From the sequence record PP496440.1: a stretch of DNA of 64,000 nt. One strand, written 5' to 3'. The position numbers and the translations under genes are program-made. Every line of letters starts with the position of its first letter. The first letter of the stretch is position 1. Of the stretch, positions 7,500 to 26,044 are shown piece after piece. The notes under the pieces are model-generated. The model saw only the letters and a list, made by a program, of their open reading frames with translations, had not been told where the DNA came from and ran no database searches.

Positions 7500-9149
7500 A
7501 TGACTATCAAGAGTGCTACGTTTGCGGAAGCTGAATCGCAAGCTCAAGGCCTAGCCAACTCCATGGGATGGCCGGGGGAGGTAATGGACAACGGTGACGG
7601 CACTGTCACTCTGTCGCCACCCGACGCATGGGACGATGAAGAGAACCCCGGCAAGGTGGCAGCGTCCAAGCTGACCGGTAACAAGGACTGTCACGTCTTC
7701 GCCAGTATGGCGGTACCCAGTGAAGGTGAGTGGATGGCGGTAGTCATTCAAGGTACACCGGCGCTGGTACTCATCGACCAAGGATCTGGTGAAGGCTGGT
7801 TGACCCTTCAGGCCCCTGCGGACTTCGATGTTCCGGAGAGCGTGCTGATTCCTTTCCAACAACGCCTGACCCAAACGGAAACCGCTTCAATGAAGAAGAC
7901 TATCGTGTTGGCTAACGTCTCCAGCGACCCGGCCACTCCTGATTATCAGGAAGCCTCGATCACTGGTGTTACGCCGGAAGGTCACATCTCAGTAGCGTTC
8001 GCTGACGGTGACATCGGTGTGTACCAAGGTAAGTTCGACCCTGCTGGTCTGATGCCAATCGCGGAAGCGGCAGGCGTTGAAGTTGCCAGCTTCAAACACC
8101 ACACCATGGTTCTGGCCAACGTTGGCACTGCGGCAGCACCTGAATACGCCGAAGCTGAGGTGGTTGGTTCCACTGAGGAAGGCCATCTGGAAGTCGCGTT
8201 CGCTGATGGTGACGTGGGCATCTACCGTTCCTTGTTCCACCCTACCGGTATCTTGCCGCTGGGTGTGACTGCCGAGACGGCCAGTGTGCTCATCGAGGTA
8301 GCTGCACGTACGGCAATGAGCCCGGAGCAGAAGCTCAAGCGTGCTGAGGACCTGCTCAAGCTGCGCACACTGCACGACAAGTACGAGACCAACACCGACG
8401 CCCTGAAAGGCAAGAAAGGTCCGGAGAACAAAGCCAAGCGGGACAAGAACAACGCTGACAAGGCCAAACTCCGTGCCAAGCTGGACAAGATGGGTGTCAC
8501 GTCCCTGCCGAGCAAAGCTCACCTTCAGCGCACCATCAAGCAGCACAGCGATCTGCCGACCCGTATGCGTGCTGGGGAGAAGAAGCCAGCTACTAAGGTA
8601 CCAACGAATAAGGCAGCACGGGACGCGGCTAAGAAGAAGTATGAGCCCACTAAAAAGGGACCAGCAGCCCCCGCGAAGTCCGAAGGTATGAGTGACAAGG
8701 ATCGTGCCGCGAAGGTTAAAGCCTTGAAAGCCAAGATCGAAGACCTCAAGGGTAGCCACAAGTACAGCATCAACAATCACAGTGCGGCGGCGAAGGAAGA
8801 CAACGCCCAAGTGCTGGACAAGATCCGTGCCGTGGAAGCTGAGATAAAAGCACTTCGCAAGAAACCCGCAGCGAAGAAGCCTAACTCGGTGGCCGTTCTT
8901 CGAGAAGCAGCTTTGGCTTTGGAAGACTATCAAAAGTCTATCAAGGGTAAGAAGCATACCCCAGCTAACAAGTTAAAGCTGGCAGAGCTAAAAGACGCTG
9001 TAGCTGAAGCTAGAAAGGTCGCCCGTGCTGACAACGCCAAGTCTGCAGCACGGGGTAAGGCACAGCACGCGAAGGATAGTGCCAAGCATGCCAAAGGTCA
9101 AAGGGAATTTGATAAAGACGTTAAACTCGGACTGAAGAGCGTTGACTAA
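7500..9149 (+). CDS. Modular head/virion protein with two Tudor/SH3-like repeats and Lys/Ala-rich C-terminal half
   Basis: Internal duplication VLANV...Y.EA.......GH..VAFADGD.G.Y; ETAS/EVAS motifs; AGGA RBS before ATG 7500. Confidence 0.7.
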   Translation: MTIKSATFAEAESQAQGLANSMGWPGEVMDNGDGTVTLSPPDAWDDEENPGKVAASKLTGNKDCHVFASMAVPSEGEWMAVVIQGTPALVLIDQGSGEGWLTLQAPADFDVPESVLIPFQQRLTQTETASMKKTIVLANVSSDPATPDYQEASITGVTPEGHISVAFADGDIGVYQGKFDPAGLMPIAEAAGVEVASFKHHTMVLANVGTAAAPEYAEAEVVGSTEEGHLEVAFADGDVGIYRSLFHPTGILPLGVTAETASVLIEVAARTAMSPEQKLKRAEDLLKLRTLHDKYETNTDALKGKKGPENKAKRDKNNADKAKLRAKLDKMGVTSLPSKAHLQRTIKQHSDLPTRMRAGEKKPATKVPTNKAARDAAKKKYEPTKKGPAAPAKSEGMSDKDRAAKVKALKAKIEDLKGSHKYSINNHSAAAKEDNAQVLDKIRAVEAEIKALRKKPAAKKPNSVAVLREAALALEDYQKSIKGKKHTPANKLKLAELKDAVAEARKVARADNAKSAARGKAQHAKDSAKHAKGQREFDKDVKLGLKSVD

Positions 9150-17351: not shown

Positions 17352-18554
17352 ATGACCACCAAGACAATGCTGTTGAACAACGTCACCGCCATCGATGTAG
17401 GATTCCTGACCGCCCAAGGCGTGTTCGGGGCCAGCGTACGTCCTTCGTTCCTTATCACCGGCGAGATGTCCGAGGACGAACAGGTGGTTGTGGATTTCTC
17501 CACGATCAAGAAGTCCATCAAGGAACTGATCGACCACAAAGAGCTGGGCATCGATCACAAGACCATCGTCATCGGTCCAGCATTTCCAAAACCTGAAGAT
17601 GACGATGACTTCACCGTCACTATGGGCGGTCCTGTGGGTGGTTCCGTTCGCATGACTGCCCCGGAAGACGCTTTCGTGTTCTTGTCCGAACGTTGCCCCA
17701 ACGCACTCAGCGAAGACTGGAACACCAAGGGTAAGCTGCTGTCCGATTGCGTTGTAGTAGATCGTCACGGCGGTCTGGTATCCCCAGAGCGCTTCGTCAT
17801 TCCGTTGGTGCAAGAACTGCTGAGCCGCGAACTGCCAAAGCTCTTCCCCACGTTGACCGACATCAAGGTGTTCTACAGCAAAGACGTCACAGCGCCGTTG
17901 CAGCCTAGCCACATCCGTGTGGGCGCCATGTTCAAAGGCGAAGATCACAATCCGATGATGGACACGCTGGTGGAAGACAACATCCGCCTCACCTACTCCC
18001 ACGGTCTGCCCCGCTCCACCAGCTGGGGCTGCCAGAACATCCTGCACGGCCACGTCAGCGTCGTGACACTGGCTATGCCTCATTCCCGCTCCGACCATAC
18101 ACAGGCTATCCTGCTGGACATTCGCCATGATCTGGCGGGTAAGTATCTGGTGGCCGAGCGTGACGTAATCCCGGCGGATGATGAACCGTCTGTACTGGAC
18201 GACGAAGATGCCGTATTGGAAGGCACCGACGAAGATCAGGACGCTAACTCCGACGATCTGATGGACGCACATACCATGTCTGAAGACGATGCGCCGGACG
18301 AAGTTGACGACGTAGCTATCCAAGGTACGAACATCGGGTTCGAGTCCATGTCTCGCGGCTCGTTCAGCCTGTTCCTGCCACACGGCAGCACCCAGATCAA
18401 AGTGATGCCGACGGACACCACCGTTGAAAACATCGCCCAGTACATCTGGGACACTCACGTCCAGCCCGCCATTGAAGCCTACGAACTGACCGACGTATCC
18501 ATGTACGTCTCGGAAGGCTTGGACAAAGGCGCATTCATCCGTCAGCAGGTATGA
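17352..18554 (+). CDS. queD: QueD-like 6-carboxytetrahydropterin synthase (tandem T-fold type) with acidic insertion
   Basis: VVDFSTIKKSIKELIDH...IDHK, YSHGL...GCQNILHGH (Zn-His and catalytic Cys), TTVENIA match the long gamma-proteobacterial QueD-like family. Confidence 0.75.
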   Translation: MTTKTMLLNNVTAIDVGFLTAQGVFGASVRPSFLITGEMSEDEQVVVDFSTIKKSIKELIDHKELGIDHKTIVIGPAFPKPEDDDDFTVTMGGPVGGSVRMTAPEDAFVFLSERCPNALSEDWNTKGKLLSDCVVVDRHGGLVSPERFVIPLVQELLSRELPKLFPTLTDIKVFYSKDVTAPLQPSHIRVGAMFKGEDHNPMMDTLVEDNIRLTYSHGLPRSTSWGCQNILHGHVSVVTLAMPHSRSDHTQAILLDIRHDLAGKYLVAERDVIPADDEPSVLDDEDAVLEGTDEDQDANSDDLMDAHTMSEDDAPDEVDDVAIQGTNIGFESMSRGSFSLFLPHGSTQIKVMPTDTTVENIAQYIWDTHVQPAIEAYELTDVSMYVSEGLDKGAFIRQQV

Positions 18555-19618: not shown

Positions 19619-22492
19619 ATGTATGTAATCCGCCGAGACGGAAGTCGTTCCTTGTTCCAGAGCGAAAAAATCCGGGCTGCTATCGAGCGAGCCTTCTTCG
19701 CGGTCCATGGTCGTGACGCTGATATTCCCACACAGACTGGCCGTGTCACTCAGGCAGTAGAGTCTGGCTTATCCAGTCAAGAGTCTGTCCACATCGAAGT
19801 CATTCAGGAAGGCGTACTAGCTGCGCTGATCGCTGAAGGCCACCCCCGCGTCGAGCATGCCTACCGCGTGTATCGAGACGCCCGCACTGCCCAGCGTGAG
19901 CTGCCCCAGGCTTACACTGACGAGAACGGTACTGCTATCAGCATCCCGGCTCTCACCGACATCCTCGCCCGCGTATCCTTCCGCCTGCCCTACGACGTGA
20001 CGGTTCACTTGGACCTGGTGGCCGTGGCACGCTCGGCGTTCCTGCAGATGTTCAACGGGATCAAAGCCGCTGACGTGCACAACGCGCTGATCTTGGCGAC
20101 CCGTGCGTTCATCGAGCGCGCCCCCGAGTACAGCAATCTGGCAGCACAACTGCTGCTGGCTCAGACGGCACGTGAAGTGTGGGACCTTGACGCCACCACG
20201 TACCCCACCGCCGATACCTACGCCAAGTGCTACAAGCAGGATACCGTAAGGCTTCTGATTGTCGGCGTGAAAGACGGCATCTACGATCCCAAGCTGACCA
20301 CTGGTGGCAGATTAGGATTTGACTTGGACCTCCTCCGGTCAGCAATCAAACCGGAACGTGACCTGCAGTTCGACTACTTGGGTTTGCAGACCCTGTACGA
20401 CCGTTACTTCATCCGCCGCGCAGGCGAAGGCGTTCGTATCGAAATGCCACAGACGTTCTTCATGCGGGTGGCCATGGGTCTGGCGATCCTTGAAAGCGAT
20501 CCAACGTCAGCGGCGCTTGAGTTCTACGACGTGTTGTCCACGTTCGACTACATGGCCTCGACCCCGACCCTGTTCAACGCAGGCACCACCCACAGCCAGA
20601 TGTCGAGTTGCTACTTGACCACTGTGCCGGACGACCTGCTGGGCATCTACGGCGCCATTCAAGACAACGCCATGCTGTCCAAGTACGCTGGCGGTCTGGG
20701 CAACGACTGGACGCCGGTGCGTGCACTGGGTAGCCTGATCAAGGGCACCAACGGCAGGTCGCAAGGCGTGGTCCCGTTCCTCAAGGTGGTTAACGACACC
20801 GCCGTCGCCGTTAACCAAGGCGGAAAGCGCAAGGGTGCCGTGTGTGCATACCTTGAAACGTGGCACATGGACATCGAAGAGTTCACCGAGCTGCGCAAGA
20901 ACACAGGTGATGATCGTCGTCGTACCCACGACATGAACACCGCCAACTGGGTTCCTGACCTGTTCATGGATCGCCAGATGAAGGACATGGATTGGACCTT
21001 GTTCACTCCGTCGGAATGCCCTGACCTCCATGAGCTGTACGGCGAGGCTTTCAAAGCCCGTTACGAGTTCTACGAGGCGGAAGCTGCCGCTGGCCGTATC
21101 CAGACCTTCAAGACCGTGCGCGCCAAGGACTTGTACCGCAAGATCCTGTCCATGATCTTCGAAACCGGCCACCCGTGGATCACGTTCAAAGATCCATGCA
21201 ACATCCGCAGCCCGCAGCAACACGTCGGCGTCGTGCACAGCTCCAACCTGTGTACTGAGATCACCCTGAACACGAAGTCCTCCACGCCTGAACTCAAGGA
21301 CGGCGAGACGGCAGTGTGCAACTTGGGTTCGATCAACCTGCCGCGCCACTTGAAATACGTGGGCGAAGGTGGGCAGTCTCTGGACATCGACCACGAGAAG
21401 CTGAAACGCACCGTTACTCTGGCTGTGCGTATGCTGGACAACGTGATCGACATCAACTTCTACCCGACCAAGGAAGCGAAGAACAGCAACATGCGCCACC
21501 GTCCGATCGGTCTGGGTGTCATGGGCTTCCAAGACGTGTTGTACGCCAACAACGTCGGCTATGACAGCGAGCTGGCTACGTTCTGGGCGGGCTACTTCCA
21601 GCGGTCCATCGCCTTGTACGCCATCAACGCATCATGTGATCTGGCCCAACTACGCGGTGCGTACGAATCATTCCAAGGTTCGGATTGGTCGCTGGGTGTT
21701 CTTCCAGTTCACACGTTCCAAACCCAGATCGATATCCGTCGTCGTCAGGGCTTCAAGGTGGAAGCAGCGCAGAAAGCCCAAGATCATGCGTACTTTATCG
21801 GCAAAACCAAGATCAACGGCAAGACGCTGAACGAGTTGGAAAGCCAATTGGCGAACAAGGTAACTCACGGCATGCGTAACAGCAACGTGATGGCGATTGC
21901 GCCGACGGCTACCATCTCGAACATCGTGGGTGTGACTCAGAGCATCGAGCCTACGTACGAGCAGGTGTTCGTCAAGGACAACCTGAGCGGCAAGTTCACC
22001 GTGATCAACCGCTTCTTGGTTGAGCAGCTGCGTAATTGCGGTCTGTGGGACTCGGACATGCTCGACCAGCTCAAGATGAAAAACGGATCCATTCAGGGCA
22101 TCCCTGAAATCCCGGAAGGCATCAAGGACGTGTATCGCACTGCGTTCGAGTATGAGCCTGAGGTGCTGATCAACTGTGCCATCCAGCGTCAGATCCCAAT
22201 CGATCAGGCACAGTCGCTCAACCTGTACATGGCGAACCCGTCGGGTAAGAAGCTGGCGAACACGTACGACTACGGCTTCGAGATTGGGTTGAAGACCACG
22301 TATTACCTCCGCGCCAAGGCTGCGTCGTCCATCGAGAAGTCCACCAGTCGTACCGGCGGCGAGCTGAACAGCGTCAAGAACGCTGCGAAGGTAGAAGCCC
22401 CCGTTGCTGCTCCAATGCCGGAAGCTGAAGGTGCTGCATGCTTCCTGCGTCCAGGTGATCCGGGCTTTGCAGAGTGCGAAAGCTGCCAGTAG
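19619..22492 (+). CDS. nrdA: Ribonucleotide reductase class Ia alpha subunit, two ATP cones
   Basis: VIRRDG ATP cone, ASTPTLFNAG, SSCYL, SSNLCTEI, VCNLGSINL, APTATIS, KTTYYLR, C-terminal CxxC. Confidence 0.97.
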   Translation: MYVIRRDGSRSLFQSEKIRAAIERAFFAVHGRDADIPTQTGRVTQAVESGLSSQESVHIEVIQEGVLAALIAEGHPRVEHAYRVYRDARTAQRELPQAYTDENGTAISIPALTDILARVSFRLPYDVTVHLDLVAVARSAFLQMFNGIKAADVHNALILATRAFIERAPEYSNLAAQLLLAQTAREVWDLDATTYPTADTYAKCYKQDTVRLLIVGVKDGIYDPKLTTGGRLGFDLDLLRSAIKPERDLQFDYLGLQTLYDRYFIRRAGEGVRIEMPQTFFMRVAMGLAILESDPTSAALEFYDVLSTFDYMASTPTLFNAGTTHSQMSSCYLTTVPDDLLGIYGAIQDNAMLSKYAGGLGNDWTPVRALGSLIKGTNGRSQGVVPFLKVVNDTAVAVNQGGKRKGAVCAYLETWHMDIEEFTELRKNTGDDRRRTHDMNTANWVPDLFMDRQMKDMDWTLFTPSECPDLHELYGEAFKARYEFYEAEAAAGRIQTFKTVRAKDLYRKILSMIFETGHPWITFKDPCNIRSPQQHVGVVHSSNLCTEITLNTKSSTPELKDGETAVCNLGSINLPRHLKYVGEGGQSLDIDHEKLKRTVTLAVRMLDNVIDINFYPTKEAKNSNMRHRPIGLGVMGFQDVLYANNVGYDSELATFWAGYFQRSIALYAINASCDLAQLRGAYESFQGSDWSLGVLPVHTFQTQIDIRRRQGFKVEAAQKAQDHAYFIGKTKINGKTLNELESQLANKVTHGMRNSNVMAIAPTATISNIVGVTQSIEPTYEQVFVKDNLSGKFTVINRFLVEQLRNCGLWDSDMLDQLKMKNGSIQGIPEIPEGIKDVYRTAFEYEPEVLINCAIQRQIPIDQAQSLNLYMANPSGKKLANTYDYGFEIGLKTTYYLRAKAASSIEKSTSRTGGELNSVKNAAKVEAPVAAPMPEAEGAACFLRPGDPGFAECESCQ

Positions 22493-22516
22493 TCTGATCC
22501 AGCTGTAATGTAAATG

Positions 22517-22550
22517 ATAGGGCGGGCAGGCAACTGTTTCCGCCCTATTT
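22517..22550 (+). terminator. Terminator-like hairpin after nrdA
   Basis: ATAGGGCGG/CCGCCCTAT stem, GCAA loop, short T tract. Confidence 0.55.
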
Positions 22551-22576
22551 CATCTGTTGCACATGGGGCTTACCTT

Positions 22577-23362
22577 ATGAGTGCTGTACCTAATCGTGTG
22601 TCCCTAGTGGACAAGCGCATCTTCAACGGAAAGGCTGATGTCAACGCCTTGCTACCGCTTCGGTATCCGTGGGCCTATGACGCCTACGTGAACGCGAACA
22701 AGAACCACTGGCTTCCCGGCGACATCCACCTCGATCTGGATCGAGTCAACCATGAACATCAGTCGTACTGGCCTGCTGTCAGCCGGTTCCTGATCAGCGT
22801 AGCCCAGCGCGCCGAGATCGATCGACAGCACATGCTCTTCGTGTATCGGGCCACCACGGCGCCCGAGGTTCGTCAGCGCTTCCTCCGTATGGGTCAGGAA
22901 GACACCATTGCCATCATGCTGGCGCAAGACATGGGGCTGGCACTGGAAGACTTCATCCCGTCTCCAGAGGTGGTGTTGTACAAGACGGAGAAAGCCTATC
23001 TGGCCGGGCTCATGGAACTGATCGAGCGTAAGCTCTTGTCCGTGGCCGAAGGCAAGTACATCCTCGAAGAAGTACCGGGGGTGCACCAGAATATACGCAA
23101 AGCAGTTGAGAACATCCACCGCGACGTGGACTCTCAGTTGGACTTCCTGTTCACCCTGCTGCGCACCTTCCTTGGCGAATGCGAGGTCAGCTCCTACCGG
23201 GGTTGCAACACGCAAGCGTTCTGGCAGAGCAGCAACCAGTACCACGCCCACCTGAACTCGATTGTTCTGAACGTTCTGACGGGGGCGCCGGTTACCCCTA
23301 CGCCGTATCAGACACAGGTGGTCGCAGACAACCAAACCAAAGACACACTGACCTGGGACTGA
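22577..23362 (+). CDS. Degenerate NrdB paralogue (intact ORF; metal ligands and radical Tyr lost)
   Basis: DKRIFNGKADVNALLPLRYPWAY...NHWLP is NrdB N-terminus; EEAFH->EDTIA, RDESGH->RDVDSQ; ends LTWD like NrdB LEWD. Confidence 0.75.
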   Translation: MSAVPNRVSLVDKRIFNGKADVNALLPLRYPWAYDAYVNANKNHWLPGDIHLDLDRVNHEHQSYWPAVSRFLISVAQRAEIDRQHMLFVYRATTAPEVRQRFLRMGQEDTIAIMLAQDMGLALEDFIPSPEVVLYKTEKAYLAGLMELIERKLLSVAEGKYILEEVPGVHQNIRKAVENIHRDVDSQLDFLFTLLRTFLGECEVSSYRGCNTQAFWQSSNQYHAHLNSIVLNVLTGAPVTPTPYQTQVVADNQTKDTLTWD

Positions 23363-23364
23363 CT

Positions 23365-24339
23365 ATGACCGTTCTTACTCACGTAAACCCGCACGAACAT
23401 GAGTGGGCGTTGGAAAAGACCTTGGCGTCAAACTCGAACCATTGGTTGCCCCAAGAGATTGGACTGTCCACCGACATCCTGCAATGGAAGACCGGACAGT
23501 TGAGCGACGACGAGATGCGCATGGTCAAGCGTAACCTAGGGTTCTTCTCCACCGCTGACTCGCTGGCCGCGAACAACATCATTCTCGGCACTATACGCCA
23601 CATAAAGAACCGTAACTGTCGCCACTACCTGTTCCGACAAGCGTATGAAGAGGCATTCCACACGGAGTCCTACGCGTACGTGATCGAGAGCCTTGGTTTG
23701 GATCAGGGTGAGATCTTCAACGCGTACAACGAGATCGACTCGATCCGGGCCAAGGACGAATTCCTTCTGCCGTACATCGAGGTGCTGACCGATCCGGCGT
23801 TCCAAGCGGACACCATCGAGAACGTCCAGATCCTGCTCAAGTCGCTGTTCGCATTCGCGTGCATTATGGAAGGTCTGTTCTTCTACGTCGGCTTCGTCCA
23901 GATGCTGTCGCTGGGCCGTCGCAACAAGCTGCCCGGCTCCTCGCAAGAGTTCCAGTACATCCTGCGCGATGAGAGCGGCCACTGCAACTTTGGCATCGAC
24001 CTGATCAACACGATCAAGCGCGAGTACCCCGGCGTGTGGACTGCGGAACTCCAGAAGGAGTGCACCGACATGTTGCGCACCGGCGTTGACCTGGAGCAAG
24101 CCTATGCGGTAGACACTCTGCCCAACGGTGTGCTGGGTCTGAACGCGGACAACACACGCCAGTACCTGGAGTTCATCGCGGACCGCCGCTGCATTCAGGT
24201 GGAGCTGCCGGTACAGTACAACCAGAACGACAACCCGTTCCCGTGGATGTCGGAGATGGTTGACTTGAACAACGAGGAGAACTTCTTCGAGAAGAAGGTG
24301 CTTGCGTACCAGCAAGCCGCCGGACTGGAGTGGGACTAA
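23365..24339 (+). CDS. nrdB: Ribonucleotide reductase class Ia beta subunit
   Basis: FFSTAD, EEAFHTESY (ExxH plus radical Tyr), MEGLFF, RDESGH, ENFFEKKVLAYQ. Confidence 0.96.
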   Translation: MTVLTHVNPHEHEWALEKTLASNSNHWLPQEIGLSTDILQWKTGQLSDDEMRMVKRNLGFFSTADSLAANNIILGTIRHIKNRNCRHYLFRQAYEEAFHTESYAYVIESLGLDQGEIFNAYNEIDSIRAKDEFLLPYIEVLTDPAFQADTIENVQILLKSLFAFACIMEGLFFYVGFVQMLSLGRRNKLPGSSQEFQYILRDESGHCNFGIDLINTIKREYPGVWTAELQKECTDMLRTGVDLEQAYAVDTLPNGVLGLNADNTRQYLEFIADRRCIQVELPVQYNQNDNPFPWMSEMVDLNNEENFFEKKVLAYQQAAGLEWD

Positions 24340-24442: not shown

Positions 24443-24456
24443 TACGGTCCGGTAAA

Positions 24457-24487
24457 TAGGGGAGTGAGCAATCGCTTCCCTATTTTT
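24457..24487 (+). terminator. Intrinsic terminator
   Basis: TAGGGGAGTGA-GCAA-TCGCTTCCCTA followed by TTTTT. Confidence 0.75.
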
Positions 24488-24946: not shown

Positions 24947-26044
24947 ATGAACGATGATCTGAGAATCACAGAGGTTAACTCTGTGAAGGAATACGATGAG
25001 CACGTGGACGAACTGCTGCTGACCTTGTTGGGGCTGGGTTCTTCCGCTACTCGCAACGACCAAGGCACCCGCAAGCTGGGCGCCACGTCGATCAGCTTCA
25101 ACCTGCTGTCGATGTACCCCTCGATCCCGATGACCACGCTACGCCCGATCTCGTGGGCCAGTATCCTCGGTGAGATGCTGGGTTTCATCCGGGGTGAGAC
25201 CAATGTCGAAGCGTTCAAAGAACTGGGCACCAAAGTCTGGAATGCTAACGCTAAGGAACCCGCGTGGAAGAGCAATGCACTCGCACCTAACGAAGGTGAC
25301 CTCGGACCAATCTATGGCAAGCAGTGGCGCAAGTGGGATGACATCAAGGTAGCCCCCTATGACACTGATCTGTCCACGATGGGCTACACAAAGATGGGCC
25401 GTCTGGACGATGAATTGGGATGGGAGACCGTAGGACTACCGCTTAACGCGGTGTGGCGTCGTGAAGTTGACCAGTTGATGGAAGCCTTGAACCGCATCAA
25501 GGCCAACCCCAACGACCGCCGTGCCGTCATCTCGGCGTGGAATCCCGGTGACATGGATTTCATGGCTCTGCCTCCTTGTCACGTGATGATGCAGCTGACC
25601 ACGGTGCCTTACACTCAGCACAAGTACGGCAGCTACATAGATGGGGTCAACGAATACGAAGCTGACATCGAGGTAGTACCCGAGTTCGTACTCAATCTGG
25701 TCGTGACCCAGCGCAGCCAAGACACTCTGCTCGGTCGAGCGTACAACATCCCGGCGTATGCTACCCTGCTTCGCCTGTTCGCTCACCTGTTGGAAATGGC
25801 GCCGGGCAATCTGGAGTTCAACGTCGGCGACCAGCACCTGTACAGCAACCATGGGGCAGCCGCTGACGAGGTAACTTGCCGAGAAAGTCTGGACAAGGAT
25901 GAGGAAGGCGAAAAGCTATTCCAACTCTCTATCGTCGGCGTGGACAAGTTCGAAGATTTGGACATCCTCACCGCCGACAACTTCATTCTGACTAATCAGG
26001 TTACGCATGGTAAGTTGGAATCCGACACCAAGATGACTGTGTAA
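24947..26044 (+). CDS. thyA: Thymidylate synthase
   Basis: LGPIYGKQWR, DRRAVISAWNP, ALPPCH, QRS.D.LLG..YN (dUMP-specifying Asn), HLYSNH. Confidence 0.93.
   Translation: MNDDLRITEVNSVKEYDEHVDELLLTLLGLGSSATRNDQGTRKLGATSISFNLLSMYPSIPMTTLRPISWASILGEMLGFIRGETNVEAFKELGTKVWNANAKEPAWKSNALAPNEGDLGPIYGKQWRKWDDIKVAPYDTDLSTMGYTKMGRLDDELGWETVGLPLNAVWRREVDQLMEALNRIKANPNDRRAVISAWNPGDMDFMALPPCHVMMQLTTVPYTQHKYGSYIDGVNEYEADIEVVPEFVLNLVVTQRSQDTLLGRAYNIPAYATLLRLFAHLLEMAPGNLEFNVGDQHLYSNHGAAADEVTCRESLDKDEEGEKLFQLSIVGVDKFEDLDILTADNFILTNQVTHGKLESDTKMTV

Follow-up and report, generated by a model that had tools for sequence, protein, structure and literature searches.

A maintained, ligand-less NrdB paralogue encoded between the nrdA and nrdB genes of Pseudomonas phage vB_PpuM-KoPa-5 is a candidate non-catalytic β′ subunit of the phage ribonucleotide reductase

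The nrdA-nrdB region and its counterparts in other phages

The window analyzed here, 64,000 nucleotides in length, is the left part of the 201-kb genome of Pseudomonas phage vB_PpuM-KoPa-5 (PP496440.1), a jumbo phage whose host is P. putida, and window coordinates are identical to those of the record. On its + strand, the nrdA gene (19619-22492) encodes the α subunit of a class Ia ribonucleotide reductase (RNR), a protein of 957 amino acids with the Pfam domains ATP-cone, Ribonuc_red_lgN, and Ribonuc_red_lgC that scores 1224 bits against NCBIfam model NF005544 (cut-off 965 bits) and has 5im3 as its top PDB match (E 1.6e-302). The nrdB gene (23365-24339, + strand) encodes a canonical β subunit of 324 amino acids, recognized by PF00268 (E 2e-78) and by NF005550 (501 bits; cut-off 309 bits). 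Between the two lies an open reading frame of 261 codons plus stop (22577-23362, + strand; TGA at 23360-23362), which is intact, as the original prediction had stated, and whose stop codon is followed after 2 nt by the start of nrdB. We refer to its product, a NrdB paralogue devoid of metal ligands, as β′. Further downstream, a hairpin with a 14-pair stem and a T-rich tail (24454-24485, + strand) resembles a terminator by consensus match only and stands at the end of the nrdA-β′-nrdB block; a thymidylate synthase gene follows at 24947-26044. No NrdI-like gene was found among the scanned neighbors of the β′ gene, and Rfam gave no match in the window between 19000 and 25000. Upstream of nrdA, a 400-amino-acid open reading frame (17352-18554) has a weak C-terminal match to 6-pyruvoyl-tetrahydropterin synthase (QueD-like; PF01242, E 3e-8), which hints at a possible modification of nucleotides or bases in the RNR module.

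The spacer between nrdA and the β′ gene, 84 nt long in KoPa-5, contains a G+C-rich hairpin (22516-22548, + strand) followed by a weak U-rich stretch. The surrounding RNA (22490-22580) folds at −33.1 kcal/mol, with a z score of −3.0 relative to shuffled sequences, and the hairpin was not called in a terminator scan. In the deposited record, the β′ open reading frame is labeled "hypothetical protein" and starts at 22514, 63 nt upstream of the ATG at 22577. This upstream start is probably a mis-call, because the extension it creates (22514-22576) reads through the hairpin and because homologues start at the position of ATG 22577, which is the start in most related phages. The preference of the original prediction for 22577 is thus borne out, as all homologues begin there.

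The β′ gene is intact in nine related phages, where the proteins share 95-100 % amino acid identity, and it is labeled "hypothetical protein" in nine deposited genomes. Beyond this group, a profile word-search of 5.8 billion proteins returned 11 clusters (at 90 % identity) with E values of 1e-88 or lower, the next matches being true NrdBs at 1e-34, and an exhaustive HMM search of 1.84 billion representatives returned eight proteins below 1e-30; a scan of IMG/VR added no further member of the β′ family. The gene was examined at seven independent loci (the window, L001, L002-4, L005, L012, L013, and L014), whose contigs resemble those of large phages in carrying family-A DNA polymerase and clamp-loader-like genes. 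The order nrdA-β′-nrdB is the same at all seven. Across the loci, the β′ and nrdB genes are separated by 1-4 nt or overlap by 10 nt, while the distance between nrdA and the β′ gene is looser, with a 4-nt overlap in L012, 48-128 nt elsewhere, or an inserted HNH gene in Peetri and L014.

Comparing KoPa-5 with Peetri, the most distant of the nine phages, we counted about 40 synonymous and about 17 nonsynonymous differences in the β′ gene, which corresponds to a dN/dS of ~0.10-0.12, versus 0.02-0.05 for nrdB. Between loci, β′ is 30-37 % identical to the KoPa-5 protein, β is 58-62 % identical, and α is 52-58 % identical. Taken together, the dN/dS ratio, the deep clusters, and the intactness of the gene indicate that, as far as sequences can tell, the β′ gene is old, fast evolving, and selectively maintained. 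These data also bear on the reading of the β′ gene as a decaying duplicate or a chance open reading frame, to which the loss of the active site (see below) and the deposited label "hypothetical protein" might lead. Against this reading stand the dN/dS of ~0.10 with its excess of synonymous (~40) over nonsynonymous (~17) changes, the persistence of an intact gene at 30 % identity in loci where even the α subunits are only 52-58 % identical, and a confidently predicted fold in both AlphaFold2 runs. We regard the pseudogene reading as refuted by dN/dS, intactness, and deep conservation, and leave it practically no probability. Decay in the homologues had been named in the original prediction as an outcome that would speak against it; the homologues, checked by dN/dS (~0.10), are instead intact.

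Several mobile elements and relationships were observed around these genes. An HNH endonuclease gene occupies the same site in the nrdA/β′ spacer of Peetri (L007, 3203-3904) and L014 (1265-1996), two loci whose β′ proteins are only ~35 % identical to each other. The possibility that β′ is the remnant of a gene split driven by a homing endonuclease was rejected, since it is a full-length paralogue with or without the HNH gene. In L013, a group I intron (7928-8137; Rfam RF00028, 67 bits, E 7e-17) interrupts nrdB just before the exon that encodes the α-binding tail, and the called NrdB protein therefore ends early. As for the KoPa-5 NrdB itself, its nearest cellular relatives are betaproteobacterial (Duganella, Pollutimonas, Polynucleobacter, and Achromobacter, at 58-62 % identity) and not from Pseudomonas. 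Among 50,697 deposited phages, its type occurs only in its own phage group and in the Acinetobacter phage MD-2021a records (54 % identity), with an Aquificae virus NrdB as a distant match (33 %).

Homology, predicted fold, and active-site residues of β′

When searched as a single sequence, β′ is significantly similar to NrdB over residues ~5-112 only, with E values of 5e-12 for PDB entry 6y2n and 1e-9 for Chlamydia R2c. Its scores against PF00268 (21.6 bits) and NF005550 (61.5 bits) fall below the respective cut-offs of 33.6 and 309 bits, and it has no PHROG match. At the level of profiles, the relationship extends much further: hhalign of the β′ family against true NrdBs gave a probability of 99.86 % (E 5.6e-31) over 269 columns, spanning β′ residues 3-239 and β residues 1-285. 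Given this span, the end-to-end alignment with NrdB, which the original prediction had made by eye, holds, and we consider the homology of β′ to NrdB as certain on sequence grounds. The protein is ~60 residues shorter than β; it lacks some of the stretch that joins helices C and E, as well as ~13 residues of the tail.

The AlphaFold2 model of β′ (pLDDT 85, pTM 0.84) comprises long helices at residues 31-42, 65-92, 96-118, 138-165, 171-201, and 221-235, followed by a disordered tail. In a fold search with this model, the top 50 PDB matches were all R2 proteins of RNRs; Chlamydia R2c and 6y2n ranked highest, with TM scores of 0.65-0.70 (0.68-0.70 for Chlamydia R2c). A control model built from an alignment of the β′ family only (pLDDT 79) gave the same helix boundaries and the same top matches, which argues that the R2 fold was not imported into the prediction from true NrdB sequences; across the two models, TMq for the top PDB matches was 0.60-0.70. 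β′ is thus predicted to adopt the ferritin-like helical fold of R2 proteins. Together with the shared sequence features described below, these relationships place β′, as judged from alignments, as an old and maintained duplicate of a NrdB of the Chlamydia/betaproteobacterial-type clade.

We then compared β′ with the catalytic residues of true NrdBs, using as reference columns D65, E96, H99, Y103, E169, E203, H206, and the tail tyrosine Y315 of the adjacent KoPa-5 β, in which all six ligands, the radical tyrosine, and the tail tyrosine are present. The residues of β′ at the first seven of these columns are A, D, A, A, L (M when the register is taken from hhalign), V, and Q; the tail tyrosine is missing. 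The changes claimed in the original prediction for the first metal/radical motif (residues 107-116, 22895-22924, + strand; EEAFHTESY to EDTIAIMLA) are readily seen where this stretch is aligned to the ExxH...Y of true NrdBs, with Ala112 in place of the histidine, Asp109 in place of the ligand glutamate, and Ala116 at the position of the radical tyrosine. The same is true of the second ExxH (residues 182-187, 23120-23137, + strand; RDESGH to RDVDSQ), where R182 and D183 are retained while the glutamate has become Val184 and the histidine Gln187. To these losses we add two that had not been listed, namely, the first carboxylate ligand, now alanine, and the glutamate of helix E. For the C-terminal radical-transfer tyrosine, the claimed replacement (LAYQ to ADNQ) stands only in part: there is indeed no tyrosine in the last 17 residues of β′, but the alignment of ADNQ with LAYQ is arbitrary, given that beyond P-x-P-Y the tail of β′ is ~13 residues shorter than that of β. 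Other positions have been kept, and W45 and D183 of β′ appear equivalent to what we take to be their E. coli counterparts, W48 and D237; the β alignment, which begins at query residue 24 and chain residue 45, is consistent with this assignment.

The losses are not peculiar to KoPa-5. Not one of the six metal-ligand columns is conserved in the β′ family, and the column of the radical tyrosine holds A, V, I, F, or R. In contrast, the adjacent true βs read D-E-H-Y-E-E-H at all seven loci, and six of the seven have the tail tyrosine, which in L013 lies within the tail exon past the intron. With no conserved metal ligand, no radical tyrosine, and no tail tyrosine, β′ therefore cannot generate or relay a radical.

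Class Ie, class Ic, and R2lox proteins were considered as well and rejected. Class Ie subunits are metal-free and operate with a DOPA radical. They have lost part of the carboxylate ligands and retain the tyrosine that becomes the radical (PMC8463856), whereas in the β′ family the tyrosine column and both histidine columns are unconserved. A class Ic R2c or R2lox protein is likewise rejected, since the Mn/Fe ligand set is lost; R2lox structures do occur as weak fold matches to the β′ model from the family-only alignment.

The disappearance of all catalytic residues, along with the fast evolution, the deletion of ~60 residues relative to β, and the lack of a match to curated families, could also be read as the mark of a ferritin-like scaffold that has been neofunctionalized for a task unrelated to ribonucleotide reduction, such as binding another ligand or protein. 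However, the gene accompanies nrdA and nrdB at each of the seven loci, and the conserved features of β′ are exactly those that it has in common with true NrdBs, including the terminus. We therefore hold such a change of function to be very unlikely.

The N-terminal arm and the C-terminal tail

Conservation within the β′ family is concentrated in five regions: residues 8-30, which form an N-terminal arm; residues 31-50, with helix A and an N-H-W motif; residues 93-118; the R-D...Q..F pattern of helix 171-201; and the last six residues. In the arm (22598-22666, + strand), the share of the commonest residue averages 0.74 and reaches at least 0.9 in 8 of 23 columns. The arm motif DKRI.NG..DVN.L.P is present in β′ and missing from the adjacent KoPa-5 NrdB, just as the original prediction had pointed out. 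To place this difference in a wider context, we tallied the arm columns in 13 members of the β′ family, 35 cellular NrdBs of the clade, and the seven adjacent βs. K13, D21, and N23 are invariant in the first two groups (13/13 and 35/35), with L25, Y37, and P47 close to invariant. The adjacent βs differ: all seven have changed or deleted K13 and D21, N23 is retained in only two, L25 is gapped or replaced in all seven, Y37 is replaced in six and gapped in one, and P47 has become alanine in five; in the βs of KoPa-5 and L005, the arm is deleted altogether. The alignments thus indicate that β′ and its adjacent β have degenerated in a complementary manner, with β keeping the chemistry without the arm and β′ keeping the arm without the chemistry. 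This pattern would be expected if the two proteins act as a single unit and is hard to explain by mere competition of a dead copy with its active relative.

At the other end of the protein, the tail (residues 245-261, 23309-23359, + strand) consists of a variable linker and a conserved L-x-W-D (23348-23359), a division that is visible in both pLDDT and conservation. The linker is the least conserved part of β′ (0.27, compared with 0.62 for the tail end), and residues 247-255 have pLDDT values below 50, while L258 and W260 are invariant. In sequence, this is how a flexible tether that anchors by its end would look. The retention of the terminal L.WD, another element of the original prediction, is plain from the L-T-W-D with which the KoPa-5 protein closes. 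An L-x-W-[DE] end also closes most of the clade's cellular NrdBs and the adjacent βs; in L013, a matching motif is found in the tail exon past the intron. Being common to the whole clade, the motif is silent on which α is bound, and we accordingly rejected the idea that the tail could distinguish host α from phage α. Covariation between the tails of β′ and its own β, considered as a test for a shared α site, was uninformative, since the leucine and the tryptophan never vary and the residue between them differs freely.

The C-terminus of β is the α-binding element in class I RNRs. Peptides with the C-terminal sequence of β compete with β for α and thereby inhibit RNR (PMC9221315), and they resemble β′ in offering a terminus without a radical source to the α cleft; however, the inhibitors are short peptides, whereas β′ is a whole, folded, and conserved R2-like body that is always encoded beside a true β. 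By analogy, β′ might be a stand-alone competitor or regulator, a monomer or homodimer that blocks or tunes α by inserting its L-x-W-D into the cleft for the β tail, directed either at the α of the host, which it would sequester or poison, or at that of the phage, which it would dampen. The retained terminus of a protein unable to deliver a radical agrees with this idea, as does the occurrence of the same terminus in the cellular NrdBs of the clade. The phage α is close to a Pseudomonas class Ia α (5im3), so that cross-binding is conceivable, and ligand-less NrdB-like genes occur in other large phage contigs without nrdA or nrdB nearby. Yet a competitor leaves unexplained why the adjacent β lost the arm while β′ retained it and why the gene is tightly coupled to nrdB at every locus. 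Moreover, the tail alone would do for such a function, but the whole fold, the arm, and the helix-A and helix-C segments are conserved, and shutting down dNTP synthesis would be an odd aim for a phage that encodes its own RNR and thymidylate synthase. On balance, we find a stand-alone competitor unlikely.

A proposed β-β′ enzyme, its precedents, and other ligand-less R2-like proteins

The reading that we favor, by a modest degree of confidence, is that the open reading frame at 22577-23362 encodes a non-catalytic β′ of the phage's own class Ia RNR, which would pair with β and dock on α. What speaks for such a partnership is the gene order at all seven loci, the coupling to nrdB, and the complementary degeneration of the two small subunits. 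According to this model, β′ and β would be made together through coupled translation and would assemble into a β-β′ heterodimer, in which β would provide the cofactor and the radical path and β′ would perform the task of the arm and add a second tail for docking on α; the working enzyme would be α2-β-β′. β′ might, in addition, aid the folding of β or its acquisition of the cofactor, as reported for yeast Rnr4. Some observations temper the model. With 34-37 % identity from locus to locus, as compared with 58-62 % for β, the much faster evolution of β′ counts against it, gene order and coupling would equally fit a stoichiometric regulator, and with a tail ~13 residues shorter than that of β, the reach of β′ to the α cleft from a docked dimer is putative. 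Of the two mechanisms that the original prediction had offered, it is thus the β/β′ partnership that is favored, while the poisoning or sequestration of host RNR gained no specific support, the tail motif being clade-wide. Its more general proposal, a catalytically dead β-like protein with a tail of the α-docking type, is supported at the levels of sequence, predicted fold, and selection.

To our knowledge, the small subunits of class I RNRs from bacteria and bacterial viruses are regarded as homodimers, and the only β-β′ enzymes described are eukaryotic, from yeast and Plasmodium; our search of open-access papers and preprints found no paper on a non-catalytic β paralogue in a phage or bacterium. 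The two precedents are yeast R2/R4 (PMC3267527) and Plasmodium PfR2/PfR4 (PMC3824934). Like the phage protein, Rnr4 (Y4/R4) of Saccharomyces cerevisiae is an R2 paralogue with the R2 fold but without metal ligands that exists alongside a canonical β; it is inactive alone and is reported to be necessary for correct R2 folding and to form a β-β′ heterodimer (PMC3267527; PMC3824934). The fold search with β′ matched PDB entries 1sms and 1jk0_B of Rnr4, which ranked 41-45, whereas the phage protein is nearest to Chlamydia R2c and 6y2n-type NrdBs, which points to an independent origin and a likeness to Rnr4 and PfR4 by function and not by descent. The degeneration of the phage β′ is also more radical than that of Rnr4, with no ligand position conserved and ~60 residues deleted. 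Unlike Rnr4, it is encoded in an operon and coupled to its β, and the partner β has itself lost the N-terminal arm; the heterodimer, reported for the yeast enzyme, is putative for the phage. PfR4 of Plasmodium falciparum, which belongs to the apicomplexan R2_e2 clade and for which interactions with PfR2 and R1 have been reported, is similarly a divergent and fast-evolving R2 paralogue that lacks the radical residue, is intact in all taxa, and has a conserved C-terminal motif (PMC3824934). It differs in being eukaryotic, in being unlinked to the canonical gene, and in conserving most key residues (PMC3824934), all of which are lost in the phage β′. Two features of non-catalytic β′ proteins as a class, an R2 fold that selection maintains despite an incomplete metal site and a canonical β that always coexists with it, are found in the phage protein, with the canonical gene next to it at all seven loci.

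Two further comparisons help to define what is particular to the phage protein. With Chlamydia trachomatis R2c and the 6y2n-clade NrdBs, it shares the N-terminal arm, the NHW motif, the segment preceding the first ExxH, and the L-x-W-[DE] end, but these proteins have a full metal site and a tail tyrosine, and β′ has neither. "Candidatus Liberibacter asiaticus" carries a short nrdB, which is similarly an nrdB-derived open reading frame without an active site beside full-length copies; that gene, however, is a 3′ fragment of recent origin that matches the long form at >99 % identity (PMC5154197), while β′ is ancient, divergent, and of full fold.

The precedent of Rnr4 also lends itself to a narrower interpretation, in which β′ would be a transient maturation factor that binds β only during folding or cofactor loading and is absent from the working enzyme. 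R2 of yeast has been described as dependent on R4 to fold correctly (PMC3267527), R4 has been suggested to act as a chaperone (PMC3824934), and translation coupled to that of nrdB would suit such a function. A chaperone, however, needs no invariant terminal motif of the α-binding type on a flexible tail, and the idea overlaps with the β-β′ enzyme without excluding it. We judge a purely transient role to be quite unlikely.

Extending the proposal of a β-β′ enzyme, it is tempting to speculate that the phage encodes an obligately asymmetric class Ia RNR in which neither β nor β′ is complete alone, the first β-β′ enzyme outside eukaryotes. Its β′ may also belong to a wider, hitherto overlooked group of R2-like proteins that lack the ligands and occur in large phages, some as stand-alone proteins that may act on the host RNR instead. 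We offer this broader picture tentatively, as one that may well prove wrong. If it were true, an independently evolved phage β′ would make the heterodimer a recurrent outcome of the built-in asymmetry of RNR, the N-terminal arm of the NrdB clade would gain a testable role, and the phage would provide a small, operon-encoded system in which to describe the contributions of the second protomer and its tail. In addition, a protein annotated as hypothetical in nine deposited genomes could be named.

Ligand-less NrdB-like proteins were also encountered in other settings. In L016 (4689-6062), a 269-kb IMG/VR contig, and in L017 (4357-5298), a Logan contig with a TubZ-like gene, both of them large and phage-like, such genes have no nrdA or nrdB within 5 kb and lie one gene away from a SNF2/ResIII helicase gene. 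Both proteins retain the N-terminal arm, and the one from L017 (P0015) ends in L-x-W-D; they may represent a different, stand-alone use of a dead β. A large group of metagenome proteins of 400-750 amino acids (P0022, P0026, P0036, P0053, P0079, P0109, and others) matches PF00268 over most of the profile, lacks the ligands, with a recurrent W-N-x-Q at the ligand columns, has no tail tyrosine, and ends in G-x-L-x-W. One cluster of this group has 96 members, with contigs of up to 300 kb. The proteins are unnamed or labeled "beta chain", and many ligand-less R2-like proteins from metagenomes thus carry the labels of ordinary RNR β chains.
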